Source: Mobula birostris (Eukaryota). From it: a stretch of 64,000 bases of DNA. The stretch spans positions 5,027,079-5,091,078 of the forward strand of contig NC_092377.1 of NCBI RefSeq assembly GCF_030028105.1. Direction: 5' to 3'. Shown here in pieces: positions 5,769 through 50,100 of the stretch (position 1 is its first letter; the number at the start of each line of letters is the position of its first letter). The translations under genes and the position numbers were made by a program. The notes under the pieces were generated by a model, which saw only the letters and a program-made list of their open reading frames with translations, was not told the DNA's origin and ran no database searches.

Positions 5769-6513
5769 GTGCCCAAATATATTAATGTATATAATATTAT
5801 GTGGGGCACAGATAGATACCAGTGTCTTTTCTCCACCGGTGAAATGTCTCGTCCCAGAGGACAGGCATTGAAAGTGAGAGAGGGTAATTTCAAAGGAGAT
5901 ATGAGGGGCAAGTTTCTGAAACAGAGAGGGGGAGAGTCTGGAATTCACTGCCGGGGTGGCGCTGCAGACAAATGTGACAGAGACGTTCAAGAGGTCCTTG
6001 GATAGACACATGAATTGGCAGGAAGTGGAGGGATATGGACATTGAGTGGGCAGAAATGATTAGTTTCACTGGGCATTTGATTGTGAATTTTAATTATTTC
6101 GACACATCACGTCCAAAGGGTCTGTTCCAGTGCAGTATTGTTCTGTGTCCGATGTTCGAAATGACATTGAAGGGAACGGAGGGATATGGATGATACACAG
6201 GAGGAGGACATTTAGTACAAATTGTCACCAAGATCAGCACAGCTTTGTGGGCGGAATGGCCAGTCCAGTGCTGTACTGTTCTATGTTCTAATAACTGGGC
6301 TCTGATCGCATTTCACCCCCTCAATCTCAACCTCCCACCCGGGTCAGTTTCCCCTGATAGAAACATCCCAAATGTTGCCTCTGGTAAAATTCTTGTCTTG
6401 CACATCAAATGAGTAGAATGTCTGGGCCTTAAACTCTTCCATGTCTGATGAGTGTGTCTGTGCAGAAATCCATCCGGGGTTCCTCCCCCAGCCGAGGTCA
6501 TACCCGCTGTGGC

Positions 6514-6542
6514 TCAGCTGCGAGACGGTGGTTTATTGTCAG
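6514..6542 (-). CDS. Probable terminal coding exon
   Basis: Strong acceptor ctcattttttttgtttcag; phase 1 gives (A)[12 protein letters not shown] weaker alternative acceptor exists at 8980. Confidence 0.6.
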
Positions 6543-9500
6543 CTGAAACAAAAAAATGAGTTGTGTGAGGTGAGCCGGTGAAGAATGGGAGAGTTAAACT
6601 ATGTGGCAGGCACTGTCTGAGTGGTTTTCCCGAGTCTCTGACTATCAGAGTTTTGGGACTCAGGAATAAGTCACCTCTGCTGGCCCTGAGAATGGACCTG
6701 TGGCCAGGGATAATGATATGGACAACATGGATGTTTCTCACTACCATGCCAGGCTACTGCTGGATGCAGGGTGCTGATGGGGGACTCTATCAGCAACACA
6801 ATGCTGCTGTCCTGATGCTGGACTCATATCAGGGGCCCTGAACAGACTATGCAAAGTGGATGTGGAGAAAAGACCACTCAGTCCCTCTAATCCGTTCTGT
6901 CACTTGATCAGATACTGGCCGATGTGTTTCAGCTCTGACCAACCTTCACAGTACAAAACCAGCAAATTCCAGCCGGTTCCAACCGAGAATTCCCACCTGT
7001 GTTGGAGAGGGTTGCATATCTCCTTGGCAACACCAGTGTTTCCAGAGCAGCTGGGCTATGGTGATATTGTACAGTTGCCCCATGTTCTAGATTCCCCACG
7101 AGAACAAATGGTTTCTCTACATCCATCAGAATGGACTCCATTAATATTGGCAGCTCCTCTCGTATCACGTTCTGGTGTGGTATCTCCAGTGTACAGGAAC
7201 ACAAGGGAATCAGGCAGATCACACCTAGTTGTACCACATTCTGGTGTGGGATCTCCAGTGTACAGGAACACAAGGGAATCAGTGATATCACACCTAGTTG
7301 TACCATGTTCTGGTGTGGATCTCCAGTGTACAGGAACACACGGGGATAGTGTGATCACACCTAGTTGTACCATGTTCAGGTGTGGGAGCTCCAGTGTTCA
7401 GGAACACAAGAGGCCACAGAGAGTCCAGGACTGAACCAGTTCCATCATGAGTACAACTCTTCCCACCATTGAGAACATCCACAAGGGATGATGTCTCAGG
7501 AAGGTGCCATCCATCAGAGAACCCCACCATCCGGGCCGTATCAGCTACTTAATGCCGTCTTCAGGCAGCAGGTACAGGAGCCTGAAGTTACACACATCGA
7601 GGTGCAACAGCAGCTTATTCCCCACTGCCTTCGGGGTCTTGAACACACCTGGTTGTGGTTCCTCTCTATGCCTTGTGGGCACCTAGCCATTTTGTTAAAA
7701 TATATCTGTTTTCATGAGGTTGAGTTGACAGCTAATGGCATGCTGGCCTTCATAACAAGGGGAATTGAGTATAGGAGCAAAGAGGTCCTTCTGCAGCTGT
7801 ACAGGGCCCTGGTGAGAACACACCTGGAGTATTGTGTGCAGTTTTGGTCTCCAAATTTGAGGAAGGACATTCTTGCTATTGAGGGAGTGCAGCGTAGGTT
7901 CACAAGGTTAATTCCCGGGATGGCGGGATTGTCATATATTGAAAGATTGGAGTGACAGGGCTTGTGTACTCTGGAATTTAGAAGGCTGAGAGGGGATCTT
8001 ATTGAAACATATAAGATTATTAAGGGATTGGACACGCTGGAGGCAGGAAACATGTTCCCGCTGATGGGTGAGTCCAGAACCAGAGGCCACAGTTTAAGAA
8101 TAAGGGGTAGGCCATTTAGAATGGAATTGAGGAAAAACTTTTTCACCCAGAAAGTGGTGGATATGTGGAATGCTCTGCCCCAGAAGGCTGTGGAGGCCAA
8201 GTCTCTGGATGCTTTCAAGAAAGAGATGGATAGAGCTCTTAAAGATAGCGGAATCAAAGGTTATGGGGATAAGGCAGGAACTGGATACTGATTGTGGATG
8301 ATCAGCTATGATCACAGTGAATGGCGGTGCTGGCTCAAAGGGCTGAATGGCCTGCTCCTGCATCTATTGTCTGTTGTCTATTGTCCACTTATTACAGACA
8401 GGAAGTGTGCCAGGTACCGGACAGGTTCAAACCTGGGACCGGATTGAAGTCCGGTGCTGTCGCCATGACACCATAGACTGGCTTGAAGAAACTTGAACAT
8501 GAAAATGAACTCTTCTAAACTGAGAGCACCGCAATCCAATTCTGCAAATGGCCGGGAACGTTGAACACTGCCTCATCTTGCCAGTAGATCTGGTTCAGAT
8601 GACACTGTGAGCTTGCTCAGGGATGGATGTCCTTTCCCTAACGTAATTCCCTGAGGAATTACTGATGGGTCCAGAAGAGGACGGGGTATGTGAGTGGGAA
8701 TTTTGCCTTGGGCATCACCTTCCAAATTCCAGCAACTCATGTAACAGATCCTGCTGGAAAAATCAGGGACAACACTTGCTCAGCCTTGAAACCAATGGAG
8801 GTGATGAACAGCACTGGGTCTTTTAGACACTCAGCTTTACCAGGACTGTGAGGATGTCTGTGCATGGCTGAGTGACCTGATTCAGTAAAAGGTGTGAATT
8901 CACACCCTGGTCCAATTGGTGATCAGACTGAGCTGCCGCTGATCCATCACCACACGGGGCTCATTGCTCACTGGCTGTTCCTGTATAAAGACTTCTCCAG
9001 TCTCACCACTTCCACAGCAGTTGATATGGTTTAGCCGGCCTGTCCAAAGATGTTGTAACATACCTTGGAGATGACCGTAGATGGACTGAGCGGGATGTTG
9101 CAGAGCCTAGTACAGAACACAGAAATGGTGTGAACAACAGCTTGACAGCTCGTGCTGTGCCTAAAGCTTCAATGTTCCAGAGGTGACCTTCCTTACCATG
9201 TAGGTGTTGTTTGAATCGACCTGGTGACCTCTTGAACCCTACAAGAGAACACAACTGAATCATTACAAACAAGAGAAAAATCTGAAGATACTGGAAATCC
9301 AAGTAACAGACACAAAATGCTGGAGGAACTCAGCAGACCAGGCAGCATCTATGTAAAAAAATACAGTTGACATTTCGGGCTGAGATCCTTCATCAGGCCT
9401 GGAGAAAAAAAGATGAGGAGTGGTAGGGGGTGGGGGAGAGGATGAAGACACACTGGGTGACAGAAGAAACTAGGAGGGGTGGTGGGGCGAAAGAGCTACA

Positions 9501-12500
9501 GGTCTGGAGAAGGGGGAATCTGATAGGAAAGGACATTCCCATTCCGACTTGTTAGTCCGAAGTTTCCTCCACTGTCACGATGAGACCACACTCAGGTTGA
9601 AGGATCAACACCTTATATTCCAGTTGGGTAGCCTCCAACCTGGTGGCATGAACATTGATTTCTTGAACTTACTGCAAGGCCCCACTCATTCACCATTCCC
9701 CATTCCTATTTCCCATGTTACCTCCTTACCTGCCCATCACCTCCCTCTGGTGATCCTCCCATGTTCCTTTCTTCCATTGCCTTCTGTCTTCTCGTTTTTC
9801 ATTCCAATCCCCATTCCAATTCCAACATGTTGATCCATGGCCGTCTTTACTACAATGATGAGGCTACTCTCAGGTTGAAGGAGAAACACCTCATATTCCA
9901 TCTGGGCAGACTCCAAACTGATAGCTAGAACAGTGATTTCTCTATATTCCAGTAAATTCTCACATCCCCCTTTCCTTTTCCTCCATTCCCCACTCTGGCT
10001 CTCTTCTTACCTCCTTATTTGACTATCACCTTTTCCTGTGTGTCTTCAGTTTTTAGCTTTTCCACTGACACCACTCAGCTACTCACTGCATCCTCCTCCC
10101 CCACTCACTTGTCTTCACCTATCACCTTCTAGCTTATGCCCCCTCTCCTCCCCATATCTTCCCATTCTGCTTTCTTCCCCCTTTCAAGGCCTGATGAAGG
10201 GCCTCAGCCTGAAGCTCCTACCTTTCCATAGATACTGCCTGACCTGCAGAGCTTCTCCAGCATTTCATGTGTTGCTCGGGATTAGTTTCATGTAGCATTC
10301 AGGTTGGCACAGCCATGATGGGCAGAAGGACCTGTTCCTGTGCTGTACTGCTGTATGGTCTGTGGTCAATATCCAGGAACAGTTACACCACATACAGTTG
10401 CAAATCATTCAGACATTGCAGAAATATTCAATGAACCACAATGTCACTGGGGAATATCCCTGATGTAAGAAGCCAAGAACATACCAGAGCGATCCCCACA
10501 CAATTCTACTTATCTGAGAAAAGCATCAGAACTCACCGGGACAGCCCTGGCCACGGAAACATTTTCATAATCTGCCCCTGGGTTCTGGTGATCAGTGGCT
10601 GTGGCTGGGTCTGTGAAATAGAGTATAAAGTGTCAGTAACACCCATCTCCGAGCTGTGAGTCCCACATTGCTGTCACAACACGACGACGGGCTCTTTCAC
10701 AATCAGTCCCTGACCTTCACATTTTAATAACCTCACACAACAATCGGATCAGAATGAACCATTTAGTCACACGTACGGGACGGGTGGTTTCTAAACGCTC
10801 TGCGTCTGATGAGGAAAATGCCTCCAGTGACAGCAAGAACTCCCAGCACGACAGCCAGAATGAGCCAGGCCAGGTACGATGGGGCTCGGCACATCTCTGT
10901 TTGAGGAATGGAAAGGAAATCACATCAGTGGGTAAACATCTAGGAAGCTCACTGTCAGTGTAGAAGGAATCCATTCGGCCCATCCTCCTGTGCCAGCTCT
11001 TTGAAAAGGGTGCTCACTGATCCCAGTCCCCTCATTCCCCAGAGTCCTGTGAAAAGTTCTTTCCAAGTATTTACCCAATCCCTGAAGGAATGATGCTGTT
11101 CCACCTGCTGTACCAACTGACTCCACTATCCTCGTCACCTCCTCAGAAACGCAATTAAGCAGATGAGACATGACTTTCGCCACACAACGTCGTGCTTACT
11201 ATATCTAATAAATCCATTCAGGAAGACACTGCTGAATAAATAGAAGCAACACTCACAACACGCTGGAGGAACTCAGCAGGTCGGGCAGCATCTGTGGAAA
11301 CGATGAGTCAACGTTTCAGGCCGGAACCCTTCGTCAGGACTGTAGAGGGAAGAGGCAGGGGCCCTATAAAGAAGGTAGGGGGAGGGTGGGAAGGACAAGG
11401 CTGGTAGGTTCCAGGTGAAAAACCGGTAAGGGGAAAGATAAAGGGGTGGGGATAGGCAGGAAATGTGAAGGATGCTTCCACGGTTGCTGCTTGACCTGCT
11501 GAGTTCCTCCAGCGTGTTGTGAGAGTCGCTTTAACCTCAGCATCTGCAGATTATTTTGTGAATAAATAGAACTTGTACTCATTGGTTACGATGAGCTGGG
11601 TGCCGTTCCCGTTGATGTCTCCCCACACGCTGCAGTAATAGACGGCAGAATCACTGTGCACCACGTCTGTGAGCACCAGGGTGAAGCTGCTGTTGGACGT
11701 GTCTCTGTAGAGCAGAAACCTCCGAGTGAAACCCCGTTCCCACTCTGATCTGCCTCCTGCCCAGTGTGTTAAAACCCACTCCATGTCCTGCCCAGGTGGT
11801 TTCCGATACCAGTGGACATCGGTGTCTTCCAGACTGACTTTGCTCATGGTACACCATAACCACGCCGTGTGACCCTCAGTGACACGCTGTATGCTCGGGG
11901 ACTGGATAAGGACAGGAACGTCTGCACCTGTAAGGGAGAATATCGTCACTTCAACCCCAGCTTGAGGAGTGGTTGGACGGAGTTGCTGTGTGGGGAACGT
12001 GGTCTTGAACAGTGTTACTGAGACACAGAGGTGGAGAGAACAAGCCCTGTCTACAGAATTCCTCTGAAAGCCTGAATCTCCACTGTGTGTGATAAATGTT
12101 TTGTGTGTGCACTGTGGTCTGGAGGAACGTTGTGTTGTGTGGTTGTATGCAGTACATGTTTACAGTCAAATCACAATAAACTTAAACTTGAACTTAAACT
12201 AAAGCAAAGGTGCTTACGGCACTGGAAGGTATGAAAGTAGATAAGTCACCTGGACTAGATGGTCAATGCCCGAGGGTTCTGAAAGTGGTGGCTGAAGAGA
12301 TTGCAGAGGAATTATTAATGATCTTTCAGGATTCATTCGATTGTGAAATGGTTCTGGAAGACTGTAAAATTGTAAATGTCACTCCATTTATTCCCACTCT
12401 TTGCCTCCTGCCAATCAGTCAATTCTTACTCCATGCTAGTATCTTCTCTGTCATATCATGGCTCTTATCTTGTTAAACAGCCTCATGTGGACCTTGTCAA

Positions 12501-15500: not shown

Positions 15501-18500
15501 TATTTCCCCCGGGATCAATAAAGTATAACTATGACTATGAAAATAAACCAGGAAATTATAGGCTGGTGAGCCTGACATCAGAAGTGGGAAAGTTATTGGA
15601 AGGTACTGTACAATAGAAGACCGCTTCGACAAACACCGATGCTCCGCCTGCCAGAATAAGTGGGACCTCCCAGTGGCCACCCATTTTACTACCACTTCCC
15701 ATTCCCAATCTGATATGTCCATCCATGGCCTCTTCCACTGTTGTGATGAGGCCACACTTAGGTTGTAGGAACAACACCTTATATTCTGTTTGGGTAGCCT
15801 CCAACCTGATGGCATGAATATTGATTCCTGAAACGTCTGGTAATGCTCCCCACCCACCCACCTCCTTCACCATTTCCCACCTCTTTCATCTCGCTCATCT
15901 TATCTCCTTGCCCACCCATTGCCTCCCTCTGGTGCTCCTCCCCTCTTTTCTTTCTTGCACGGCCTTCTGTCTCTTTCACCAAACAACTTCCCACCACTTT
16001 AACCCATCCTTCCCCGTTCAGGTTTCACCTATCAGCTTGTGCTTTTCTCTCTCCCCTCCTCCCAGTTTTCGAATCGGCTTTTTTCCTCCAGACCTGTAGA
16101 AGGGTTTCAGCCCAAAACTTTGACTGTACTCTTCTCCACAGATGCTGCCTGGCCTGCTGAGTTCCTCCAGCATTTTGTGAATGTTCATTTTGATTTCCTG
16201 CATTTGAAATTGGATTCGACCTAGGCTTTGTGGGAGAAGACAGAGGGTGGCAGTAGCTGGTTGCCTCTCTGACTGCAGGCCTGTGACTCGTGGAGTGCCG
16301 CAGGGATTGGTGCAGGGTCTGTTGTTGATCTTCCTCAATATAAATAATTTGGATGATAATGTGATTAACTGGATCGGCAGATTAACAGATGACACCAAGA
16401 TTAGGGGTGCAGAGAAGAATGAGGAATTCTATCAAAATTTGCAGTGGGATCTGGAGCAGCTGGAAAAATGGGCTGAAACATGGCAGATGATATTTAATGC
16501 AGACAAGTGCAAGGTGTTACACTTCAGTCGGACCAAACAGGGTAGATTGTGAACTTTAGGACACTGAGGTGTGTGGTAGAACAAAGGGATCTGGGAGTAC
16601 AGGTCTATAATTCATTGGAAGTTATCACAGGTAGATTGGGTCATAAAGAAAACTTTTGGCACAGTGGTATTCGTAAATCAAAGTATTAAGTACAGGAGAT
16701 GGGATGTTATGTTGAATTTGTATAAGATGTCAGTGAGGTGTAATTTGGAGTATTGTATGCAATTTCGGTTGCTTGCCTGTAGAAAAGATGTAAATAAATT
16801 TGAAAGAGTACAGAGAAGATCTTCAAGGATGTCACCAGGTCTTGAAGACCTGAACTCTGAGGAAAGATTTAATGGGTTTGGTCTTCATTCCATAGAACGT
16901 AAAAGATTGAGGGGAGATTTGATAGAGGTATACATAATTGTGGGGGGTATAGACAGGATAAATGCAAACAGGCTTTTTCCACTGAGGTCGGGTGGGACAG
17001 CCACTGGATGACATGGACTGAGGGTGAAAGGTGAAATGTTTAAGGAGAACATGAGGGAAATGTCCTTCACTCAGAGGGTGGTGACAGTGTAGAATGAGTT
17101 GCCAGTGCAAGTGGCGTATGCGAGCTCGATGTCAACGTTTGAGAGAAGTTTGGATGATTGGGGTATGCAGAGACAAATGCGCTGAAGGCCTGTTTCAGTG
17201 CTACATTTTCTATGACTCAATGACTCTATTAATGTTGCTTCTGCCATTAATCGTATTCTCTTACTTTGAATTTAATGGTCAGTCTATTTCTTTTACACAC
17301 ACCATTTTATTCTCTTCTCCCTTCAACTTGTTCTGTTTTTTCCGATTGGTCTGACAACTCACACCCACAAGGTGAGCTCTCAGTAAATTGGTTTATTATT
17401 GTGTTGGTCAGAAGAAACTTCAGTCTAATCAAGGACATGGGGAGCAGACAAGCCAGTTATCTTTGTTTCCCCCCATTTTGTGGACTCTGAACAGTTTCTT
17501 GCTTTTGGATAATCTAATCAGAACAACTGAATGTGGACACAGGAAGTTTCAGGTAATGATCTGCTAAACCTGAGACCATTCTCAAACAAGTTTTCAGAGG
17601 TTTTCAGAGCCTGCAGAGGGACTTGGACCAGCTGGAAAAATGGGCTCAAAAATGGCAGATGGAGTTTAATACAGACAAGTGTGAGGTATTGCACGTTGGA
17701 AGGACAAACCAAGGTAGAACATACATGTAACATTCCGTTATATTAGCTTGTGTATGCCTAGGGGAAATCCCACCCAGCACCTGCCTCAACACTCCCCTTA
17801 GGGTCAGTCGCCGCCCGGATCAATCACAAACATCAATCATCAGCCAGCACACCCAGTAAATTTTAACAAGTACACTTTATAGATATTACTAATTCTATGA
17901 CATTAATATGCATTTGATACAGATAGGAAAGTAATGAAAAAAAAAGGCGCCAACACTTATCAAAGTCCAAGTTCTTCGCGCACTACCGTTGGAGCTCAAT
18001 TCGATTCCTGACAACCCCCCGAATCCTGTCGACTCACGGCTCGGGACCACCCTGAGTGATCGACCGGAGCCTCTCCGCACGTCCACCGTCCTCCCTGTCT
18101 CTCCTCCGACTCCCCGTCTCTCCTCCGACTCCCCGTCTCTCCACCATCCTCCCCGTCCCGTCTCTCCTCCGACTCCCCGTCTCTCCTCCGACTCCCCGTC
18201 TCTCCTCCGACACCCTGTCTCTCCTCCGACTCCCCGTCACTCCTCCGACTCCCCGTCTCCCCTCCGAACCCCCGTCTCCCCTCCGAACCCCCGTCTCTCC
18301 TCCGACTCCCTGTCTCTCCTCCGACCCCCCGTCTCTCCTCTGACCCCGTCTCTCCTCCGACTCCCTGTCTCTCCACCGTCCTCCACGTCTCTCCACCGTC
18401 CTCCCCATCTCTCCACCATCCTCCCCGTCTCTCCTCCGACTCCCCATCTCCCCACCGTCCGTCCCGTCTCTCCTCCGACTCCCCGTCTCTCTCCCAAATC

Positions 18501-21500
18501 CCCGTCTCTCCTCCGACTCCCCCGTCTCTCCTCCGACTCCCCGTCTCTCCTCCGTCCTCTCCGTCTCTCCTCTGACTCCCCGTCTCTCCACCGTCCTCCC
18601 AGTCTCTCCTCCGACTCCCCGCCTCGCCTCCAACTCCCCATCTCTCCTCCGACTCCCCGTCTCCTCTCCGACTCCCCGTCTCTCCTCCGACTCCCCGTCT
18701 CTCCACCGACTCCCCATCCCTCCACCATCCTCCACGTCTCTCCTCTGACTCCCCGTCTCTCTCCCGACTACCCGTCTCTCCACCGACTCTCTGTCTCTCC
18801 ACCGTCCTCCCCGTCTCTCCTCCGACTCCCCGTCTCTCCGCCAACTCCCCGTCTCTCTACCATCCTCCCATCTCTCCTCCGACTCCCTGTCTCTCCTCTG
18901 ATTCCCCACCAAAACTCAGTCCACAGTCATACCATACAGCATGGTATCCGAAAACAAAACGATACATAACCACCCATTGGCTAATAGAAGGCGGTTATCT
19001 ACTTTAAAGTAAAACAAGCTGTTAGTGCAAACTCTCTTCAGCGTTAAAACACAACAAAGCCGCATTCCCCAGACTAACATAACAAAGACGCCATTTTAAA
19101 TTTAACAAAAAGAAAGACCCCTTACACACTCTCCCCCCACCACAAAAAGTCATGCCCTCATGACGTTAACAGAGTTCACCAGTGCTCCTTGTAAACACAA
19201 AACCCAACCCAGGTGCATAAAGCAGTGACATAACTTTGCAGGGCAGTAGAGATCACACCCTGCTCTCCCGGCGCTACATAAGTGAGTCTTTCCGGGGGAA
19301 GCCTACTCCTCTGAGACCTCTGGACTTCCTCTGCTGACTCTCCCTGTTCAGACACCCCAGTTGACCCCTCGGGCCTATCTGTCGGACCTTCCCCTTCACC
19401 GGGATCCCTCTGCCCCGGTGAGCCCTCTGGCTCGGGCTCTGCCTCCACCCTCTCCTCCCCCAATGCCGGCTGTAATACAGGCGGCTCTGCAACACCCTCC
19501 CTCGGTTCCCCTGACTCAGTGATGGAAGGGCCAGGAATCTCTTCTCCCGGCACCGGGGAATCAGCGAACGGAAGCAGGTACCACACATCCGAATCATCAT
19601 CTTCCGATGACATATCCCTTCTCGAGGTGGGGACCGGCCTCGGTTTCTACGCAGCGGGCTCTTCCCTCGCCCCATGCCTTCTCATAGTCCTCGTACTAGG
19701 CGTAAACTCCCATTCGGGCTCTGGGTCTACCTTCACCTCTCGACCCAGAGGCAACAGGTGGTTCCGATGGAGTACCTTGACAGGCCCCTGCCCGCCCTCA
19801 GGTCTCACCTGGTAAACCCGGAGATTCGGCATCTGACTCTCCACCACATAGGGGGTGGCTGCTCAACGGTCCGCCAACTTGTGCTTACCCTGTAGTCCTA
19901 AATTCCGGGTAAGGACTCGGTCTCCCGGCAATAGCTGGACGAACTTTACCTTCTGATCATACCTCCTTTTATTCCGCTGGTTCTGCTTGGTGGCTGCCGC
20001 CTCAGCCAACTCATACGCCCTTTTCAACTCTCTCCTCATATCGGTCATGTACTTATCTGGTCTCACCCCGGCTACCACCTCCTGAACCGCTGAGAACCGT
20101 CCCTGAGGGTCCGAGCCCCCTGGTCGGCCCAAAGCACATTCCTCGGCCCGTACCTCTCGGATCAGCTGTCCGAATGATGGAGGGGGGCTCCGCTTAAATA
20201 ACTGCTGTACACTCCAAGCCACCCTGTCATCCTCCCGGGAACCGCTACATATCTGGCTCATCCTTAACTTAGCCACTTCATCCTCCCTCACTACCCCTCG
20301 TCGCCGCAACCCCGTAAGCTTTCCTTCCAGCCTGAAAGCATAGTCTGAGAGCTTTACCCCTCTTCTCTGCCCCATCCGTTGAAAATCCGCTAAATGCCGC
20401 CAGGGATCCCCTGACAGTCCAAACACTTCCTCCAAAGCGTCCAAACACTCCGATAGGGAAGCCAAGGGGCGTGCCGCTCTCAGATCGCGGACCACCCGGG
20501 CTGCATCGTCCCTTAAGCTTTCCACCAATCGCTGTCTCTTTTCCTCATCCGAAACTGGCCACACCTCTAACAATTGGGATGTATCTTCAACCCAGGTCTC
20601 ACAGTCATCCTCCCCTTCCGGGGTGGGCTTGGCTCCCGAGAAAATTCTCAGCTTCGGGCGGTGCACCTCAACCCTTCTCGCCAGGGAGGTAATGGCAGCC
20701 GTTAACTCGGCAGTCTCCTCAAGCCCATGGGGGCGAGGCCTGGCCAAACCTTCCCACTCCACACCTCTACCTCTTGCTACGGGCACCCGGCCGGGGGCCT
20801 CATCTAGCTCCTCCTCCTCCGGCACCTCCTCACTTGCGTCCTCGGGGAGAGTGTGGAGACCCCACGGCCCCGCCTCCCCCTGGACCTGGACTGTCGCTGG
20901 TAGTTCCAACGTCATGACGTCGGCACTCGTCCGCACCAACATCCAGCTGGAATCCAGTTCTTTCCCACCCCTTCTAGCTACAAGTTCTACCTGCCCGATA
21001 CCTTTAATCAGACTCAACCCTCGCACCAGTACCTCTGCCAGAATGCGATAATCGACCCCGCTTACCACACACGCATGATTCACCGGTACCTCATCCAATT
21101 CACACCAACTGACAATCTTGTCTCAATCCATCTTCACACCACTTACCGCAACGACAAGTACAACTTTCCCGAAAAAAAAATCCAAATCCCTGACGGTAGC
21201 CCCCACTTGTAACGTTCCGTTATATTGGCTCGTGTATGTCTAGGGGAAATCCCGCCCAGCACCTGCTTAAACACTCCCCTCAGGGTCAGTCGCCGCCCGA
21301 ATCAATCACAAACATCAATCATCAGCCAGCACACCCAGTAAATTTTAACACATACACTTTATAGATATTACTAATTCTATGACATTAATATGCATTTGAT
21401 ACAGATAGGAAAGTAATGGAAAAAAATGGCGCCAACATTTATCAAAGTCCAAGTTCTTTGCGCGCTACCGTTGGAGCTCAATCGATTCCTGACAACCCCC

Positions 21501-24500
21501 CCGAATCCTGTCAACTCACGGCTTGGGACCACCCTAAGTGATTGACCGGAGCCATCCTCCTCATCTTTCCTCCAACTCCCCATCTCTCCTCCGACTCCCC
21601 GTCTCTCCTCCAACTCCACGTCCCTCCACCGTCCTCCCCGTCTCTCCTCCAACTCCCCATCTCTCCACCGTCCTCCCCGTCTCTCCCCCGACTCCCCGTC
21701 TCTCCCCCGACTCCCCGTCTCTCCTCCGACTCCCTGCCAAAACTCAGTCCACAGTCATATCATACAGCATGGTATCCGAAAACAAAGCGATACATAACCA
21801 CCCATTGGCTAATAGAAGGCGGTTATCTACTTTAAAAGTAAAACAAGCTGTTAGCGCAAACTCTCTTCAGCGTTAAAGCACAACAAAGCCGCATTCCCCA
21901 GACTAACATAACAAAGACGCCATTTTAAATTTAACAAAAAGAAAGACCCCGTACATACAAGGTTAATGGTAAGGCACTGAGGAGTGCAGTAGAACAGAGG
22001 GATCTGGGAATACAGATACAAAATTCCCTAAAAGTGGCGTCACAGGTAGATAGGGTCATAAAGAGAGCTTTTGGTACATTGGCCTTTATTAATCAAAGTA
22101 TTGAGTATAAGAGCTGGAATGTTACGATGAGGTTGTATAAGGCATTGGTGAGGCCGAATCTGGAGTATTGTGTTCAGTTTTGGTCACCAAGTTACAGGAA
22201 GGATATAAATAAGGTTGGAAGAGTGCAGAGAAGGTTTACAAGGATGTTGCCAGGACTTGAGAAACTCAGTTACAGGGAAAGGTTGAATAGGTTAGGACTT
22301 CATTCCCTGGAGCGTAGAAGAATGAGGGGAGATTTGATAGAGGTATATAAAATTATGATGGGTATAGATAGAGTGAATGCAAGCAGGCTTTTTCCACTGA
22401 GGCAAGGGGAGAAAAAAACCAGAGGGCATGGGTTAAGGGTGAGGGGGGAAAAGTTTAAAGGGAACATTAGGGGGGCTTCTTCACACAGAGAGTGGTGGGA
22501 GTATGAAATGAGCTGCCAGATGTGGTGGTAAATGCGGGTTCTTTATTAACATTTAGGAATAAATTGGACAGATACATGGATGGGAGGTGTATGGAGGGAT
22601 ATGGTCCATGTGCAGGTCAGTGGGACTAGGCAGAAAATGGTTCGGCACAGCCAAGAAGGGCCAAAAGGCCTGTTTCTGTGCTGTAGTTTCTATGGTTTCT
22701 AAGGTTTCTAAGTAGTCATTTGTTCTATAAAGGATGTGGACTCTGAACTGGTTCTTGATTCTGGGACAATCAAATCAGAACAATAAACCTGGGACCATTC
22801 TCAGAGGAGTAGCTACTTGTTATGTAAAATGCCAGACCTACCAAAGAAGCAATCTGTAACCTCATTAGGCTCTCTCTATGTTGCCTCATTTAACTTGTTT
22901 GGATCAATCAGAGTGTAAAGGCACAAATACAGAAGGCTGAAGTGGCCAGTGCCATGAAACAATGTTGGTTGTAGCTCTATACAATGACCAGTAAGAAAGT
23001 GACCCAGCTAGGTTACGTGACCTTGAGCCAATGGGATGGAGGTCCAATGATTCAATTGATAAAGAACAGTATAAGACTCAGGAGCTGCAAATACGCAGGG
23101 GGTGATAACTCTCCAGCAGCCAGCAAGCAACCATCTCAGATAAGGAGGACGCCACGGACAGTTGGAGATCGGGACCACGAGGAACTCCAGGTCAGCGGAG
23201 ACTTCTTTCCCGGGTAATACCTTTCCTCTTCATGACTGTTCATGGAGGGTCAGGGGTTCTAGTAGGGAGCACACAGGTAGATAAAAGTGTGAACCCATGT
23301 GCTTTGTAGTTGAAACAATAAGCTACAGTGGTATGCAAAATTCTGGGCACCCCTGGTCAAAACTGCTGTTCCTATGAATAGCTAAGTGAGTAAAAGATGA
23401 CTTGATTTCCAAAAAGCATCAAGTTAAAGATGACACATTTCTTTAATATTTTAAGCAAGATTACTTTTTGATTTCCATCTTTTCTAGTTTCAAAATAACA
23501 GAAAAGGAAAAGGCCCCCAAAGCAAAAGTTTGGGCACCCTGCATGGTCAGTACTTAGTAACACCCCCTTTGGCAAGTATCACAGCTTGTAAACACTTTCT
23601 GTAACCAGCTAAGAATCTTTCAATTCTTGTTTGGGGGATTTTCACCTACTCTTCCTTGCAAAAGGCTTCTAGTTCTGTGAGATTCTTGGGCCGTCTTGCA
23701 TGCACTGCTCTTTTCGAGGACTATACACAGATTTTCGATGATGTTTAGGTCAGGGGACTGTGAGGGCCATGGCAAAACCTTCAGCTTGCGCCTCTTGAGA
23801 TAGTCCATTGTGGATTTTGAGGTGTGTTTAGGGTCATTATCCTATCCAAACTTCTCTTTTCACCTTCAGCTTTTTTACAGACGGTGTGATGTTTTCTTCC
23901 AGAATTTTCTGGTATTTAATTAAATTCATTCTACCCTCTACCAGTGAAATGTCCCCCGTGCCACTGGCTGCAACACAAGCCCAAAGCATGATCGATCCAT
24001 CCCTGTGCTTAACAGTCGGAGAGGTGTTCTTTTCATGAAATTCTGCACCCTTTTTTCTCCAAACATACCTTTGTTCATTGCGGCCAAAAAGTTTTATTTT
24101 AACTTCATCAGTCCACAGGACTTGTTTCCAAAATGCATCAGGCTTGTTTAGATGTTCCTTTACAAACTTCTGATGCTGAATTTTGTGGTGAGGATGCAGG
24201 AAAGGTTTTCTTCTGATGACTCTTCCATGAAGGTCATATTTGTGCAGGTATCGCTGCACAATAGAACAGTGCACCACCACTCCAGAGTCTGCTAAATCTT
24301 CCAGAAGGTCTTCTGCAGTTAAACGGGGGTTTTGATTTGCCTTTCTAGCAATCCTACAAGTAGTTCTCTCAAAGCTTTCTTGGTCTTCCAGACCTCAACT
24401 TGACCTCCACTGTTCCTGTTAACTGCCATTTCTTAAATATATTACGAACTGAGGAAACGGCTTCCCGAAAACACTTTGCTATCTTCGTATAGCCTTCTCC

Positions 24501-27500
24501 TGCTTTGTGGGCATCATTTATTTTAATTTTCAGAGAGCTAGGCAGCTGCTTAGAAGAGCCCATGGCTGCTGATTGTTGGGACAAGGCTTGAGGAGTCAGT
24601 GTATTTATAAAGCTTTGAAATTTGCATGACCTGGCCTTTCATAGAACATAGAACAGAGAACATAGAATAGTACAGAACAGTACAGGCCCTTCGGCCCACA
24701 ATGTTGTGCCGACCCTCAAACCCTGCCTCCCAAATAAGCCCCCACCTTAGATTCCTCCAGATACCTGTCTAGTAGTCTATTAAACTTCACTAGTGTATCT
24801 GCCTCCACCACTGACTCAGGCAGTGCATTCCACGCACCAACCACTCCCTGCGTAAAAAACCTTCCTCTAATATCCCCCTTGAACTTCCCACCCCTTACGT
24901 TAAAGCCATGTCCTCTTGTATTGAGCAGTGGTGCCCTGGGGGAAGAGGCGCTGGCTATCCACTCTATCTATTCCTCTTATTATCCTTTACACCTCTATCA
25001 TGTCTCCTCTCATCCTCCTTCTCTCCAAAGAGTAAAGCCCTAGCTCCCTTAATCTCTGATCATAATGCATACTTTCTAAACCAGGCAGCATCCTGGTAAA
25101 TCTCCTCTGTACCCTTTCCAATGCTTCCACATCCTTCCTATAGTGAGGTGACCAGAACTGGACACAATACTCCAAGTGTGGCCTAACCAGAGTTTTATAG
25201 AGCTGCATCATTACATCGCAACTCTTAAACTCTATCCCTCGACTTATGAAAGCTAACACCCCATAAGCTTTCTTAACTACCCTATCCACCTGTGAGGCAA
25301 CTTTCAGGGATCTGTGGACATGTACCCCGAGATCCCTCTGCTCCTCCACACTACCAAGTATCCTGCCATTTACTTTGTACTCTGCCTTGGAGTTTGTCCT
25401 TCCAAAGTGTACCACCTCACACTTCTCTGGGTTGAACTCCATCTGCCACTTCTCAGCCCACTTCTGCATCCTATCAATGTCTCTCTGCAATCTTTGACAA
25501 TCCTCTACACTATCTACAACACCACCAACCTTTGTGGCATCTGCAAACTTGCCAACCCACCCTTCTACCCCCACATCCAGGTCGTTAATGAAAATCACAA
25601 AAAGTAGAGGTCCCAGAACAGATCCTTGTGGGACACCACTAGTCACAATCCTCCAATCTGAATGTACTCCCTCCACCACCACCCTCTGCCTTCTGCAGGC
25701 AAGCCAATTCTGAATCCATCTGGCCAAACTTCCCTGGATCCCATGCCTTCTAACTTTCTGAATAAGCCTATCGTTTGGAACCTTGTCAAATGCCTTACTA
25801 AAATCCATATAGATCACATCCACTGCACTACCCTCATCTATATGCCTGGTCACCTCCTCAAAGAACTCTTTCAGGCTTGTTAGACACGATCTGCCCTTCA
25901 CAAAGCCATGCTGACTGTCCCTGATCAGACCATGATTCTCTAAATGCCTATAGATCCTATCTCTAAGAATCTTTTCCAACAGCTTTCCCACCACAGACAT
26001 AAGGCTCACTGGTCTATAATTACCTGGACTATCCCTACTACCTTTTTTGAACAAGGGAACAACATTCGCCCCCCTCCAGTCCTCCGGTACTATTCCTGTG
26101 GACAACGAGGACATAAAGATTCTAGCCAGAGGCTCAGCAATCTCTTCTCTCACCTCGTGGAGCAGCCTGGGGAATATTCCGTCAGGCCCCGGGGACTTAT
26201 CTGTCCTAATGTATTTTAACAACTCCAACACCTCCTCTCCCTTAATATCAGCATGCTCCAGAACATCAACCTCACTCATATTGTCCGCACTGTCATCAAG
26301 TTCCCTCTCATTGGTGAATACCGAAGAGAAGTATTCATTGAGGACCTCGCTCACTTCCACAGCCTCCAGGCACATCTTCCCACCTTTATCTCTAATCGGT
26401 CCTACCTTCACTCCTGTCATCCTTGTTTTCTTCACATAATTGAAGAATGCCTTGAGGTTTTCCTTTACCCTACTCGCCAAGGCCTTCTCATGCCCCCTTC
26501 TTGCTCTTCTCAGCCCCTTCTTAAGTTCCTTTCTTGCTTCCCTATATTCCTCAATAGATCCATCTGATCCGTGCTTCCTAAACCTCATGTATGCTGCCTT
26601 CTTCCTCCTGACTAGATTTTCCACCTCACTTGTCACTCATGGTTCCTTCACCCTACCATTCTTTATCTTCCTCACCGGGACAAATTTATCCCTTACATCC
26701 CGCAAGAGATCTCTAAACATCGACCACATGGCTAACAATGACTGTGACTAGGCCATAGCCCTAACAAGCTAATTAAGGTCTGAGACCTTGGTAAAAGTTA
26801 TCTGAGAGCTCAAATATCTTGGGGTGCCCAAACTTTTGCATGGTACTCCTTTCCTTTTTTTCACTCTAAAATTGTACAAAACAAAAACTATACACTAATC
26901 TTGCTTAAAATTGTATGCATTTCTAAATGACAATAAAAGAGGACTGAGTGTTCTCATCATATAAAATGTTGAAAAGAATGTTTTATCTTTAACTTTATGA
27001 CCTTTGGAGATCAGTTTATCTTCTACTCACTTAACTATTCACAGTAACAGAAATTTTGACCAGGGTGCCCAAACTTTGCATGCCACTGTACTTGTTAATG
27101 ACTACAGATTCTCTGTTCCTCACCGATCATTATTACAAATGCTGATTCTTGTAACAGAATTGGCGTCCCTAGGTGGGCTGGACGATAAATCATTTTGTTC
27201 AGCAGGAGACTCGAGTCAGAGTCGGACCACCTGGGTGTGTTATAGTGATCTGGGGCTTGGTAGTTAGTGTTTACTAACCTAGGATGATGAATTCAGGAAA
27301 TTCTGCAAGTCCACAGGTCTTGGATTGTTTCGTTTGGAGGGGAGACCACCAGAAATACGTGTTGGAGAAGTGGCCACAGTACGAGGAGTTTGTGAGTCAC
27401 CCTGGCTGTGAAGGGAAAACTGCTGGTGATGATCTGTGGAAAATCGCCCAAGGGAAGCTGTCGAGCAGGAAGTTTAAACAATTACGAAAGAACAGTAGCA

Positions 27501-47100: not shown

Positions 47101-50100
47101 CCGCCTTCTTTTCGGTACTTCTCTATGATTGTATGAGTCTAGTTGGATATAGAGCCTCAGTGTAATCTGTTGGCTGTTTCGACCTGAGGTTAAGTTAACT
47201 ATTTTTCATAAGGACTAGTGAATGTGGCATTCTCTACCTCCGAGTCAGTGGGATCAGGAAAGGGTGTGCTGATTGAGGGCAGGGATTCCCAACCTTTTCC
47301 ATGCCATAGAGCCTTTCATTAACCAAGAGTTCTTGGACCCCAGTTGGGAACCCATGATTTAAGTCATATTGATATTAAGGAGGAAGAGATGTCAGGTCTG
47401 TTGAGGAACATTAAGCTGGGTAAGTTCCCAGGGCCTGATGGGATCTGTCTCAGGTTATTGAGAGAGACAAAAGAGGAAATCTTTGTGTCCTCTTTAGCCA
47501 CAAGTGAGATCCCATGTAAGAGAAGAGAGGACAATTTGTTCCTCTGTTTATGAAGGGGATCAGAGGAAAACCTGGAAATTATGGGCTGGTGAGCCTTACA
47601 TTTGTGGTAGAGAAATGACTGAAGAAGATTCTTCGCAATGGGATCTTACATAGGTTTAATAGGAACAGTCAGCATTGTTTTACATAAGAACATAGAAATA
47701 GGAGCAAGAGTCGGCCTCCTGGCCTGTCGAGCCGGCTCCGCCATTCAATAAGATTATGGCTGATCTGACCATGGACTTATCTCCACCTACCTGCCTTTTC
47801 CCCATAACCCTTACTTCTTCTACTATCCAAAAATCTATCCAACCTTGTCCTTAAATATATTTACTTAGATAGCCTCCACTGCTTCATTGGCCAGAGGATT
47901 CCACAGATCTTATGTGGCTGAAGTCATGTGTCATAAATTGAGGCATTTTCCAAGAACGCCTTTACCAGGAAATAATTTGCCCCTTCCACACTTGCCGTAT
48001 CCTTTATGACACCACTAAAATTGGCCTTTCTCCAATTTAGAATCTCAACCCATGGACCAGACTTACCCTTCTCCATAATTATCTTGAAACTAATGTAAAT
48101 ATAATCACTAGATCCAAAGTGATTCCCACACACACCTCTTTCACCTGCCCTGTCTCGTCCCCATCCAGACCATGCTCTTTCCTCACTGCTGCTATCGAGC
48201 AGGAGGTACAAGAGCCTCAGGACCCACACCACCAGATTTAGGAACAGTTATCACCACAACCATCAGACTCTTGAACCAGAGGGGATAACTTCAGTCAACT
48301 TCACTCACCCCATCTCTGAACTGTTCCCACAACTTTCAGACTCTTCATCTCATGTTCTTGATATTTGTTGTTTTCTTTTTTGTTTTTTTATCTTTTTGTA
48401 TTTGCACAGTTTGTTGTATTTTGTTCGTCTTGTGTGTGATTTTTCAGTGACTGTATTGTGTTTCTTTGTACTTACTGTGTATACGCACAGGAAAATGAAT
48501 CCCAAGGTCATATATGGTGACATATATGTACTGTGATAAGAAATTTACTTTGAACTTTAATAAGAGATGCAGTATCACTCTCTCTCAGTGGAACCTCTAT
48601 ACATTGATGAAGGAAAGTTTCCAGAACACATTTGACAAACTCTTTCCCATCCAACCCTTTTACAGTATGGGATTCCAAACCAATATGTGGAAAGTTAAAA
48701 TCATCTACTATCACAAACTTATGTTTCTTGCAATAGTCTGGAATCTCAGTTAGAAGCAATAGAACCTCAGAACATTGAGCTGCCAGTCCTGCCCCTCCTG
48801 CAACAATCTCACTAATGACCACAATATCACAATTCTACACACTGATCCAAGCCCTCAGCTCATCTGCCGTTCCTACAATACTCCCTGTATTGGAATATGT
48901 GCAGCTCAGAACATTAGTCCCACCATGCTTGAAAATTTGATTCCTTACTTTGTAGGTAGGCTTCAGGATATCATTCTCCACAATAACTCCACCAGCTGTC
49001 CTGCAATTCTAGATTGGATTCAAAACTGGCCAGAGAAGACATAGGAATGGTGAAGGGCTGTTACTCTGCTAGTTACTGTGACTAGTGGTTTCCAAGAGGA
49101 ACCATATTGCAGCCTTTGCTTTTTCGTGATATTAGTTGAGATTTATGTGGGCTAATATGTTAGTTTGCTGATGACACAAAAATGGAAATGTGTGGCATTG
49201 TGGATTGTTTAAAAGAGTGTCAGTGGGTACTGAGGGATCCATGTTGCAGATTTGGGCTGAAGATTGGGAAAGAAAAATTAATCTTGATTAGTGTATGGTG
49301 CTACAATTTGGGAGGTTAAATGTACATGACAGTATACAATAACTGGATGGACTACTTGGAGCATTGGTGTACAGGAGGATCTTGTGGTACAAATCAATTT
49401 TTAACTGAAAGTGGCAATGCAGCGCTGAAGAAGGATCTCAGCTAGAAGCATTGACTCTTTATTCCTCTCCACAGATGCTGCCTGACCTGCCGAGTCCCTC
49501 CAGCATTGTCTGTGTGTGTTGCTCTGCATTTCCATTAGCTGCAGAATCTCTTGTGTTTATGATTGCAGGTACAGAATGCATATGCACAAGGAGTCATGCA
49601 GCAGCTGTGTGAAGTTCTGTTTGGGGAACATTTCCTGTGCAGTTCTGGTTACCCCGTTACAGGAAGGCTGTGGAGAATTTGGAGAGGATGCAGAAGAGGT
49701 TCACCAGGATGTGGCCTGCATTGCAGAACTTTAGTTAGAAGGGGAGTTTGGACAAACTTGGTTTGTTTTCTCCAGAAAATCGGCGGCTGAGCTGCGACCC
49801 TAAAGTCAGATAAAACAGAAAGAATCGATAGGGAAACACAAGGGAATCTGCAGACCAAAAACACGAGTAAGTCTGCAGATGCTGGAAATTTAGAGTAACA
49901 TACAAAATGCTGAAGGAACTCAGCAGGTCTGGCAGCATCTATGGAAATGATTAAACATTTGATGTTTCGGGCAGACACCCTTCATCAGGACTGGCAAGGA
50001 AGGAGGAAGATGCCAGAATAAAAATGTTGGGGGAGGGAAAGGAAAATGTAGAATATGAGAGATGAAGCCAAGTGGGCGTGAAAGATAAAGGTCTGGTGAA

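Follow-up and report, generated by a model that had tools for sequence, protein, structure and literature searches.

The window analysed here, the whole stretch of 64,000 nucleotides from the manta Mobula birostris, contains a minus-strand copy of a family of elasmobranch type-I receptors with 2-4 tandem germline-joined VJ domains, an uncharged transmembrane (TM) helix, and a signalling tail of their own. In RefSeq, the members of this family are labelled “uncharacterized protein” or “immunoglobulin kappa light chain-like”, and a Pfam search of the full-length members gave no significant match to a C1-set domain. Seven tail exon sets of the ITAM type and six of the ITIM/ITSM type are located on C9 at 3.6-5.1 Mb, and no published name was found for this paired elasmobranch receptor cluster. 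The features at the locus, in the 5' to 3' order of the minus strand, are the following:

34223-33879, minus strand, VJ exon V-a, intact, V2 type, donor A/GTGAGT
32232-31885, minus strand, VJ exon V-b, intact, V3 type, donor G/GTAAGT
20261-19890, minus strand, first coding exon of both RefSeq models, donor G/GTAAGC spliced to the TM exon
11927-11583, minus strand, VJ exon V-c, germline-joined with an open frame, donor AT instead of GT (11582-11581)
10896-10777, minus strand, TM exon, 120 nt, phase 1/1, uncharged helix followed by an RRR stop-transfer
10610-10537, minus strand, cytoplasmic exon 1, 74 nt, phase 1/0, with a YENV motif (YxN, Grb2-type)
9238-9197, minus strand, ITAM exon 1, 42 nt, phase 0/0, ending after the Y-x of the first YxxL (...DSNNTYM)
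9196-9107, minus strand, ITAM-splitting intron, exactly 90 nt, phase 0, gtaagg...tactag
9106-9064, minus strand, ITAM exon 2, 43 nt, phase 0/1, 14 residues and the first base of an Ala codon
6542-6514, minus strand, coding part of the last exon, phase 1, (A)DNKPPSRS and the stop codon TGA (6516-6514)

The DNA was read across ITAM exon 1 and the intron that follows it. Exon 1 reads GGT TCA AGA GGT CAC CAG GTC GAT TCA AAC AAC ACC TAC ATG and lies between an acceptor ending in cttgtag and the donor gtaagg, and exon 2 reads GCT CTG CAA CAT CCC GCT CAG TCC ATC TAC GGT CAT CTC CAA G and is followed by the donor gtatgt. The intron cuts the first YxxL as YM/AL (TAC ATG/gtaagg...tactag/GCT CTG), in agreement with the first-pass annotation, which had placed a 90-nt phase-0 intron at this site (TYM/AL), and if it is read through, a stop is reached after 11 codons. 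The spliced exons encode YMAL-x7-YGHL, i.e., a YxxL, a spacer of exactly the seven residues claimed previously, and a second YxxL. An Asp upstream of the motif (DSNNTY) had also been pointed out in the first-pass annotation. This residue is present, but at position -5 from the first Tyr, while position -3 is occupied by an Asn, which fits the published consensus D/E/NxxY (PMC4536121), and the Asp was for this reason rejected as a meaningful feature of the ITAM. The cytoplasmic tail contains the canonical pattern D/E/N-x-x-Y-x-x-L/I-x(6-8)-Y-x-x-L/I. With the phases listed above, the exons join into a single open frame up to the stop codon; the phases of the TM exon and cytoplasmic exon 1 force the reading frame of the ITAM. 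The Y and N of the YENV-type motif are invariant in 14/14 aligned tails, and the 3' UTR of the last exon extends toward an AATAAA at ~6094.

The RefSeq protein XP_072123078.1 (Mobula birostris), which is annotated at the window locus, has a C-terminal tail that is exactly the spliced tail of the window, including window-specific residues, while its isoform X2 (XP_072123079.1) skips ITAM exon 2 and is shifted in frame. Additional transcript evidence was obtained from assembled contigs of runs that were presumed to be RNA, based on empty introns and CT..AC joints. Among the joints listed for these contigs, 9238->10537 is present in four runs and 9064->6542 in runs X2 and X16, both with CT..AC ends. 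The RNA-like contigs stop exactly at both borders of ITAM exon 1, one contig aligns exactly to the TM exon at 10777-10896, and their depth covers positions 6000-6542 but is zero at 6597-7193. A contig of 525 letters is fully accounted for by 366 letters of the last exon and the 43, 42, and 74 letters of the three exons upstream, which leaves no space for the 90-nt intron. Since a contig from run X2 contains window-specific letters, including the Cys in EMCRAPS, the window copy is transcribed and spliced. The use of the 9197/9106 junction in mRNA, for which a check in transcripts had been proposed, fits both the contig arithmetic and the RefSeq model, and we consider the evidence for it strong but indirect.

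The ITAM is conserved well beyond the window. In all paralogous copies on the contig (7/7), both YxxL motifs are retained, with GTAAGG as the donor and TACTAG as the acceptor. The pattern TYMALQxPxQSIYxxL is found in Mobula, Hypanus, Hemitrygon, Heterodontus, Pristiophorus, and Heptranchias, that is, in rays and three shark orders, and related forms are present in the tails of Chiloscyllium and Rhincodon. A tail-based search from Heterodontus retrieved no chimaera member, a result that does not show absence. Among the seven manta copies, pi is 0.033-0.041 in the exons compared to 0.047 in the intron, and the exons are thus no better conserved than the intron; the manta duplicates are too young for paralog diversity to show constraint. 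The constraint on the ITAM exons is seen only between species. The conservation in elasmobranchs and the transcription confirm that the YxxL pair is a genuine canonical ITAM and, as was suggested from the DNA in the first place, not a chance pair. The Pfam ITAM model (PF02189) gave no match at E<=1 to the spliced tails or to the full-length member P0005, but the model has 20 positions and is derived from adaptor sequences, so that a missing match carries little weight. When the same model was searched over the whole genome in six frames, only marginal matches were obtained elsewhere, which fits split ITAMs and is uninformative for membership.

A phase-0 intron after Yx is the rule for ITAM genes (PMC4536121, PMC5112662), and the exon comparison with CD3 and FcR-gamma proposed in the first-pass annotation could be made within the manta genome. 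Here, the ITAMs are split as SAYE/RL, DTYS/KL, and DIYQ/GL in the CD3zeta-like gene, as SEYE/HL and GVYT/GL in the FcRgamma-like gene, and as EYA/PI in the CD3epsilon-like gene, which means that 6/6 of these adaptor ITAMs share the split after Yx in phase 0. The broader claim that the tail is homologous to the ancestral ITAM exon pair draws on the position and phase of the intron and not on sequence matches to the adaptors: a profile of the tail searched against 1.8 billion proteins gave no match to CD3, FcRgamma, DAP12, or CD79, and it is therefore the intron position by itself that points to homology with the adaptors. As the tails of these four show no detectable similarity, the Pfam model has no match, and ITAMs are short enough for an origin de novo, it could be argued that the YxxL-x7-YxxL motif and its intron position arose independently, by convergence or chance, in a tail unrelated to other ITAM exons. 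However, the chance of an intron falling on the ITAM site is only ~2% (4 introns and ~219 phase-specific tail positions), the position is common to all six adaptor ITAMs of the same genome, and the motif has been kept in rays and three shark orders. Further arguments against this explanation come from a comparison with the CEACAM receptors.

The tail of the manta family is a three-exon module that consists of a YxNx exon, a 42-nt exon ending in Yx, and an xL..YxxL exon. Only 16 of the 1.8e9 proteins match the tail profile, including a PSG22-like protein in the horn shark and CEACAM-like proteins in skink and frog, and BLASTP comparisons of the cytoplasmic part only with CEACAM-type tails gave E-values of 3e-9 and 1e-7. 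In horn shark, frog, skink, and manta, the same tail is attached to ectodomains of the CEACAM type. The ectodomains of these tail-sharing proteins match only CEACAM N domains in PDB, whereas V-a matches antibody variable domains. The exon structure of the CEACAM-type tails was read in the manta and skink genes. When the horn-shark CEACAM-like tail was searched against the manta genome, no match was obtained, as the exons are too short, and the manta gene was instead located by a search with the ectodomain. It contains a 42-nt exon ...SSIYM/gtaagg, followed by ELNLGERSVYSDL, and the skink gene contains a 42-nt exon ...NDVYE/gtaagt, followed by TLQHPDQSLYQQL. The same exon sizes and phases, together with the significant similarity, support that exon shuffling has linked the tail module to two types of ectodomain that are not related. 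The first-pass annotation had proposed that the tail was shuffled onto a VJ ectodomain; the recurrence of the module on CEACAM ectodomains is in line with such shuffling, but the tail of the window copy does not itself appear to be joined to a VJ domain, given the AT donor of V-c and the start of the RefSeq models in a PNMA/gag-like ORF. Because the 42-nt phase-0/0 exon and its flanking phases recur in the CEACAM-type genes of manta and skink, and the tail-wide similarity is significant, an origin of the motif by convergence or chance is already strongly disfavoured, and we assign it a very small probability.

The tail in the window is 93-95% like the tails of the full-length family members P0005, P0009, and P0030, and the TM-YENV-ITAM layout is identical. 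As for the splicing of a leader and at least two VJ exons to the TM exon, V-a and V-b are themselves intact, the donor of V-c is dead, and both RefSeq models begin within the PNMA-like ORF. V-c is 92% identical to V-a, which has the donor A/GTGAGT, and it is covered only by contigs with 15-25 mismatches, i.e., from paralogs, and by no low-mismatch contig; it is probably a dead exon. The first exon of the RefSeq models is contained in a PNMA/gag-like retroelement ORF at 19866-21122 (Pfam PNMA, E 2.7e-35), and the annotated RefSeq transcripts start in this retroelement, ~9 kb upstream. A leader exon of the paralog type was not found within the 64-kb window. Based on the annotation and one mutated donor, the window copy appears to be decapitated and probably encodes no VJ-ITAM receptor.

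This raises an alternative with an even chance of being correct, namely that the locus is a dying, 5'-truncated, pseudogene-like duplicate without receptor function, in which the ITAM is left over as a relic and the TM-ITAM exons are transcribed only as a side effect of a retroelement promoter. This alternative concerns the function at the window locus and not the nature of the motif. The change from GT to AT in the V-c donor would be expected of such a relic, as would the ~20 kb of LINE, Tc1, and PNMA/gag-like insertions between V-b and V-c, and the two RefSeq proteins both begin in the PNMA-like ORF and have no signal peptide. While a paralog-type leader exon was not found in the window, the leader may be located outside of it, and while one isoform omits ITAM exon 2 and shifts the frame, the frame from the TM exon to the stop codon is entirely open and every splice site is intact. 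Moreover, the contig with window-specific letters indicates a copy that is transcribed and spliced, and the upstream exons V-a and V-b, which are undamaged and have good splice sites, could still join the TM exon across a 21-kb intron. For the motif itself, we find it highly probable that the mini-exons encode a canonical ITAM in the tail of the tandem-VJ family, that this module is shared by descent with the CEACAM activating tails, and that the window copy is transcribed and apparently decapitated.

For the intact members of the family, we propose that clustering by ligand would lead to phosphorylation of both ITAM tyrosines by Src-family kinases, that Syk/ZAP-70 would then dock via its tandem SH2 domains, and that the phosphorylated YENV site would recruit Grb2. 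Signalling would thereby proceed without an adaptor chain, and the ITIM/ITSM-tailed sibling genes in the same cluster may supply the opposing signal. We regard it as improbable that the motif is instead mainly inhibitory (ITAMi), a hemi-ITAM or endocytosis signal, or a set of single YxxL/YxN docking sites. Such roles could be suspected from the homologous tails of lamniform, carcharhiniform, and orectolobiform sharks, which lack the segment bearing the second YxxL and keep only DYxNI and ...VDSNLIYENV (ITIM-like LxYxxV), but both YxxL motifs and the exact 7-residue spacing are retained in rays and in squalomorph/heterodontiform sharks. Conservation within the tail is highest at the YxN motif and the first Tyr of the ITAM, and one isoform loses the second half of the motif; on the other hand, a separate ITIM/ITSM tail type is present in the same manta cluster, as expected of an activating/inhibitory pair. 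Beyond the activating ITAM that we favour, a more speculative scenario, which we consider unlikely, is that the tandem-VJ receptors originated from an antigen-receptor-like gene that predated the adaptors and signalled by itself, in which a single-exon VJ was wired to the ITAM tail shared with CEACAM, and that the 43-nt exon 2 serves as a splice on/off switch, and perhaps also as the step from an ITAM to an ITIM-like tail in some sharks. Skipping of exon 2 shifts the frame and would delete the ITAM. In CEACAM1, the long and short tails are produced by exon skipping.

That a phase-0 intron follows Yx is textbook knowledge about ITAMs and as such represents no new principle; as a known hallmark, this split confirms a genuine motif that was passed on as an exon module. 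New is the significant sequence similarity of the three-exon tail of the VJ receptors to the activating tails found on CEACAM-type receptors in shark, frog, and skink. The combination of interest is an antigen-receptor-type VJ wired without an adaptor to a CEACAM-type ITAM module that is present from shark to reptile, and this is a concrete instance, which can be dated, of a signalling tail being shuffled between two lineages of IgSF receptors. In addition, a paired ITAM vs ITIM/ITSM receptor cluster is hereby defined in elasmobranchs. VJ domains that never rearrange have been sought as relics of the gene into which the RAG transposon moved (PMC12227049). The window locus calls for caution: the copy is transcribed, but its ectodomain is probably missing.

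The manta family shares features with several known receptor systems. Like the ITAM adaptors (CD3 gamma/delta/epsilon/zeta, FcR gamma, DAP12, and CD79a/b), it has the consensus D/E/NxxYxxL/I-x7-YxxL/I and, as in the CD3zeta-, FcRgamma-, and CD3epsilon-like genes of the same genome, an exon boundary after Yx in phase 0. Unlike these adaptors, which have an acidic TM residue and a minimal ectodomain, its TM helix has no acidic or any other charged residue, the chain carries its own large ligand-binding ectodomain (2-4 VJ domains in the members), and no similarity between the tails is detectable beyond the motif. The NITRs and NILTs of teleosts are likewise clustered multigene families of paired activating/inhibitory IgSF receptors, in which some members have a cytoplasmic ITAM (PMC3022915), and the NITRs also have V domains with a J-like motif. 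However, compared by literature description only, these are bony-fish families, in which the second domain of the NITRs is V/C2-like rather than a second VJ and the domains of the NILTs are NKp44-like. The hagfish NICIR/ALA, likewise an IgSF receptor, has a V domain and carries cytoplasmic ITAMs itself (PMC3634110), but it belongs to a jawless-fish lineage and combines IgV and IgC domains with two ITAMs. UrIg and UrIg2 of sharks and rays share the non-rearranging single-exon VJ domain, but they have C1-type constant domains (3 and 9, respectively), UrIg is a secreted protein, and neither of the two is reported to have an ITAM (PMC12227049). A kinship with UrIg/UrIg2 was rejected on architecture, since the present family consists of VJ domains only, followed by a TM helix and an ITAM/ITIM tail. 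The Atlas look-alikes NCR3-like, JAML, CD226, and CD7 were regarded as generic V-set leads only.

The closest resemblance is to the CEACAM activating tails, as represented by the Xenopus Ceacams (PMC5112662), the horn-shark “PSG22-like” protein (XP_067874551.1), and proteins from skink (KAJ6663888.1) and frog (XP_075047046.1). Both groups have a YxNx motif (Grb2-type) upstream of a canonical ITAM that a phase-0 intron interrupts after Yx, and both have a phase-1/0 exon followed by a 42-nt phase-0/0 exon ending in Yx. The similarity extends over the whole tail, as illustrated by xLQHPxQS(I/L)YxxLQG in manta and skink. The manta VJ family differs in that the N-terminal, IgV-like CEACAM-type N domain is absent and replaced by VJ domains, which have the canonical pair of Cys residues and the J motif G-x-G-T-x-L-x-V, that there is one additional short 3' coding exon, and that the CEACAM-type genes are located in other clusters (C17 and others) than the VJ family on C9. 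As judged from these sequence comparisons, the CEACAM activating tail is the detectable sister of the manta VJ-receptor tail.

The first-pass annotation placed a 90-nt phase-0 intron within the first YxxL of the motif, after Y-x, with a seven-residue spacer before the second, and both statements proved exact when the minus strand was read: the spliced exons give a canonical YxxL-x7-YxxL with the phase-0 intron at that site. The tail of this gene, a member of the elasmobranch tandem-VJ receptor family, is encoded as follows:

10896-10777, minus strand: TM exon, 120 nt, phase 1/1; uncharged 23-residue helix, then RRR
10610-10537, minus strand: cyt1 exon, 74 nt, phase 1/0; contains ADYENV
9238-9197, minus strand: ITAM exon 1, 42 nt, phase 0/0; 14 residues; acceptor ...cttgtag, donor gtaagg
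9196-9107, minus strand: intron splitting the ITAM, 90 nt, phase 0; ends in tactag
9106-9064, minus strand: ITAM exon 2, 43 nt, phase 0/1; 14 residues and one base; donor gtatgt
From 6542, minus strand: last exon, phase 1; encodes (A)DNKPPSRS; stop at 6516-6514, AATAAA near 6094

Every exon phase is compatible, and a single frame is open from the TM exon to the stop. The Asp reported upstream of the motif is present, but at position -5 from the first ITAM tyrosine, while position -3 contains an Asn, which the consensus D/E/NxxY permits (PMC4536121).

The annotation also equated the intron position with that of the classical ITAM genes. CD3zeta-like, FcRgamma-like and CD3epsilon-like genes of the manta were found with the Pfam TCR_zetazeta and CD3 Ig models, and the DNA downstream was read. 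All six adaptor-type ITAMs of the three genes, in the CD3zeta-like (SAYE/RL, DTYS/KL and DIYQ/GL...PPR-stop), FcRgamma-like (SEYE/HL and GVYT/GL...YESL) and CD3epsilon-like gene (EYA/PI...YDKL; slashes mark the junction), are interrupted behind Yx by phase-0 GT..AG introns, and no contiguous ITAM was present at these loci. The literature gives the same rule (PMC4536121, PMC5112662), and the equation holds; the split after Yx is an already well-known ITAM hallmark. The FcRgamma-like gene (L026/L027, C18:98440401-98460400, on another manta contig) apparently contains two split ITAMs, SEYE/HL...YEEL and GVYT/GL...YESL, and a second ITAM is reported in Xenopus laevis FcRgamma (PMC4536121).

The evidence that the 9197/9106 junction is used in mRNA is strong but indirect. 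The RefSeq protein of the locus, XP_072123078.1 (226 aa), has a C-terminal tail identical to the conceptual splice and carries the copy-specific Cys in EMCRAPS, Arg in GSRGHQ and Ala in HPAQS. Four public runs were aligned over 6000-11950 as contigs whose RNA nature is only guessed; their depth over 6597-7193 is zero, as RNA would give. The joint 9238 to 10537 is present in all four runs and 9064 to 6542 in two of the four; both joints are bounded by CT..AC, which reads GT..AG on the strand of the gene. The joint 9106 to 9197 is absent among the 15 joints listed, and its use is read from the RefSeq model and from one contig of run X16, whose 525 letters equal the last exon (366), ITAM exon 2 (43), ITAM exon 1 (42) and cyt1 (74) with nothing between, leaving no space for a retained 90-nt intron. 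Contig alignments also end precisely at 9197 and 9106 (aligned sides of 42 and 43-44 letters). In run X2, one contig bears window-specific letters in the TM exon, which indicates that the window copy itself is transcribed. RefSeq isoform X2 (XP_072123079.1, unrelated to the run) omits the 43-nt ITAM exon 2, which shifts the frame of the last exon (6501-6542) and removes the ITAM, a possible splice switch; the joints listed include no RNA row for this form. A short interspersed repeat (9258-9412, 11238-11346, 16078-16198, 49425-49564 and others) adjoins ITAM exon 1 upstream; RNA-like contigs pile up on its copies to enormous depth, and these copies are the source of most spurious joints.

Could the motif be a chance pair of YxxL? 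Seven copies of both the ITAM exon pair and the TM exon are located at 3.87-5.13 Mb of contig C9, on which the window covers 5027079-5091078 (Mobula birostris), and all seven keep both YxxL, donor and acceptor. However, the intron (pi 0.047) is as conserved as the exons (0.033-0.041) in these young duplicates, which are thus uninformative on selection. Unlike these paralogs, conservation across species does speak on selection. TYMALQxPxQSIYxxL ends RefSeq proteins with tandem VJ domains in the rays Mobula hypostoma, Hypanus sabinus and Hemitrygon akajei, and is placed likewise in the sharks Heterodontus francisci, Pristiophorus japonicus and Heptranchias perlo, while Chiloscyllium and Rhincodon have related ITAMs. 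A tail-based search starting from Heterodontus gave no chimaera member, a negative that does not amount to evidence of absence. With four introns and about 219 phase-specific tail positions, an intron would fall at the ITAM site by chance in about 2% of cases. Retention in rays and sharks, together with this figure, argues against a chance pair, as the annotation had held.

Searched against 1.84 billion proteins, a profile built from 14 tails (alignment A2) matched only 16, and none of the 16 was CD3, FcRgamma, DAP12 or CD79. Notable among the matches, outside the VJ family, were three: the horn-shark "pregnancy-specific glycoprotein 22-like" XP_067874551.1, skink KAJ6663888.1 and frog XP_075047046.1. 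In PDB searches their ectodomains matched CEACAM N domains only, and the manta V-a domain (V-a being one of three germline-joined VJ exons in the window) matched antibody variable domains. BLASTP of the cytoplasmic parts only gave E 3e-9 (36% over 70 residues) between the horn-shark VJ receptor and the horn-shark CEACAM-like protein, and E 1e-7 between manta and skink. In a manta CEACAM-like gene (contig C17), a YENF exon with a phase-0 end is followed by a 42-nt exon, GTSNNAQDESSIYM with donor gtaagg, and then by ELNLGERSVYSDLK; in the skink gene, an 83-nt phase-1/0 YENV exon precedes a 42-nt exon, ARSDSSAHSNDVYE with donor gtaagt, and then TLQHPDQSLYQQLQG..., beside which the second ITAM exon of the manta VJ gene (14 residues, then (G)) can be set. 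YxNx beside the ITAM is conserved in activating Ceacams of Xenopus (PMC5112662). Tail similarity, matching gene structures and YxNx together show that the whole three-exon tail, beyond the motif alone, is common to two receptor families with unrelated ectodomains. Such sharing is what exon shuffling predicts and supports it. The annotation's proposal that an ancestral ITAM exon pair was shuffled onto a VJ ectodomain thus stands as to the shuffled module, but the sister tail that can be detected is that of activating CEACAM receptors, not that of CD3G, FCER1G or TYROBP. CEACAM-type N-domain exons are greatly expanded in the manta genome: of at least 58 matches, most are on C17 (31.8-33.0 Mb), others are at scattered sites, and a second group is located at C9:121.97-122.35 Mb.

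The VJ link in that proposal appears to be broken at this locus, where the following features lie upstream of the tail:

34223-33879, minus strand: V-a, intact, good splice sites
32232-31885, minus strand: V-b, second VJ exon, intact, good splice sites
24990-26636, minus strand: LINE-type reverse transcriptase ORF (RVT_1), in the 20-kb V-b to V-c interval
23623-24394, minus strand: Tc1/mariner-type transposase remnant, same interval
19866-21122, minus strand: PNMA/gag-like ORF (Pfam E 2.7e-35)
11927-11583, minus strand: V-c, third VJ exon, 687 nt from the TM exon, 92% identical to V-a; donor AT, versus GT in V-a

V-c is placed as the membrane-proximal VJ exon is in the one paralog examined, its donor is dead, and it is covered solely by mismatched, paralogous contigs. 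Both RefSeq proteins of the locus start at 20261 within the PNMA/gag-like ORF, whose donor at 19890 is joined to the TM exon in both models, and contain neither a signal peptide nor an Ig domain. The ORF has the appearance of a retroelement insertion into the receptor gene. It is flanked by GC-rich arrays (18037-18915 and 21380-21760) that translate as repeats of an 18-residue unit, with near-identical stretches at 19025-19165 and 21854-22027. No leader exon resembling those of the paralogs was found within the 64-kb window. Given the RefSeq start, the dead donor and this absence, the chances are about even that the locus holds a remnant that has lost its ectodomain and is driven by a retroelement, and not a functional VJ-ITAM receptor gene. 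The putative receptor function is carried by the intact paralogs P0005 and P0030.

Interspersed with the seven ITAM-type tails are six copies of another tail exon (L034-L039, C9:3617496-4983279), with an ITIM-like MFYADI and an ITSM-like TEYAII in one unsplit exon (for example in the family protein P0004), which makes this a paired activating and inhibitory family. Homologous tails in lamniform, carcharhiniform and orectolobiform sharks read ...DYxNI...VDSNLIYENV and lack the second-YxxL segment, leaving an ITIM-like LxYxxV; those of P0014, P0018, P0020 and P0023 in A2 end ...VDSNLIYENVSS-NKDPSQ. To judge from the alignment, this would be an ITAM-to-ITIM-like conversion inside one receptor family.

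The motif, its exon structure, the open frame, transcripts, cross-species conservation, a module common with CEACAM-type tails and paired ITIM-type siblings are all shown. The ITAM is genuine, its split is canonical, and it belongs to a shuffled module; the annotation's observation is confirmed and its interpretation partly supported. By established ITAM biology, clustering would lead Src-family kinases to phosphorylate both ITAM tyrosines, Syk/ZAP-70 would dock by its tandem SH2 domains, and Grb2 would bind pYENV. An adaptor would be unnecessary because the TM helix is uncharged.

No published name for the family was found in the literature, and identity with UrIg or UrIg2 was rejected since their C1 domains set them apart. 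NITR, NILT and hagfish NICIR are analogues. The ITAM split itself was already known; the new part is a receptor family with a CEACAM-type tail, which has YxNx, the 42-nt exon and the split ITAM in common with the activating CEACAM receptors, while the ectodomains are unrelated.
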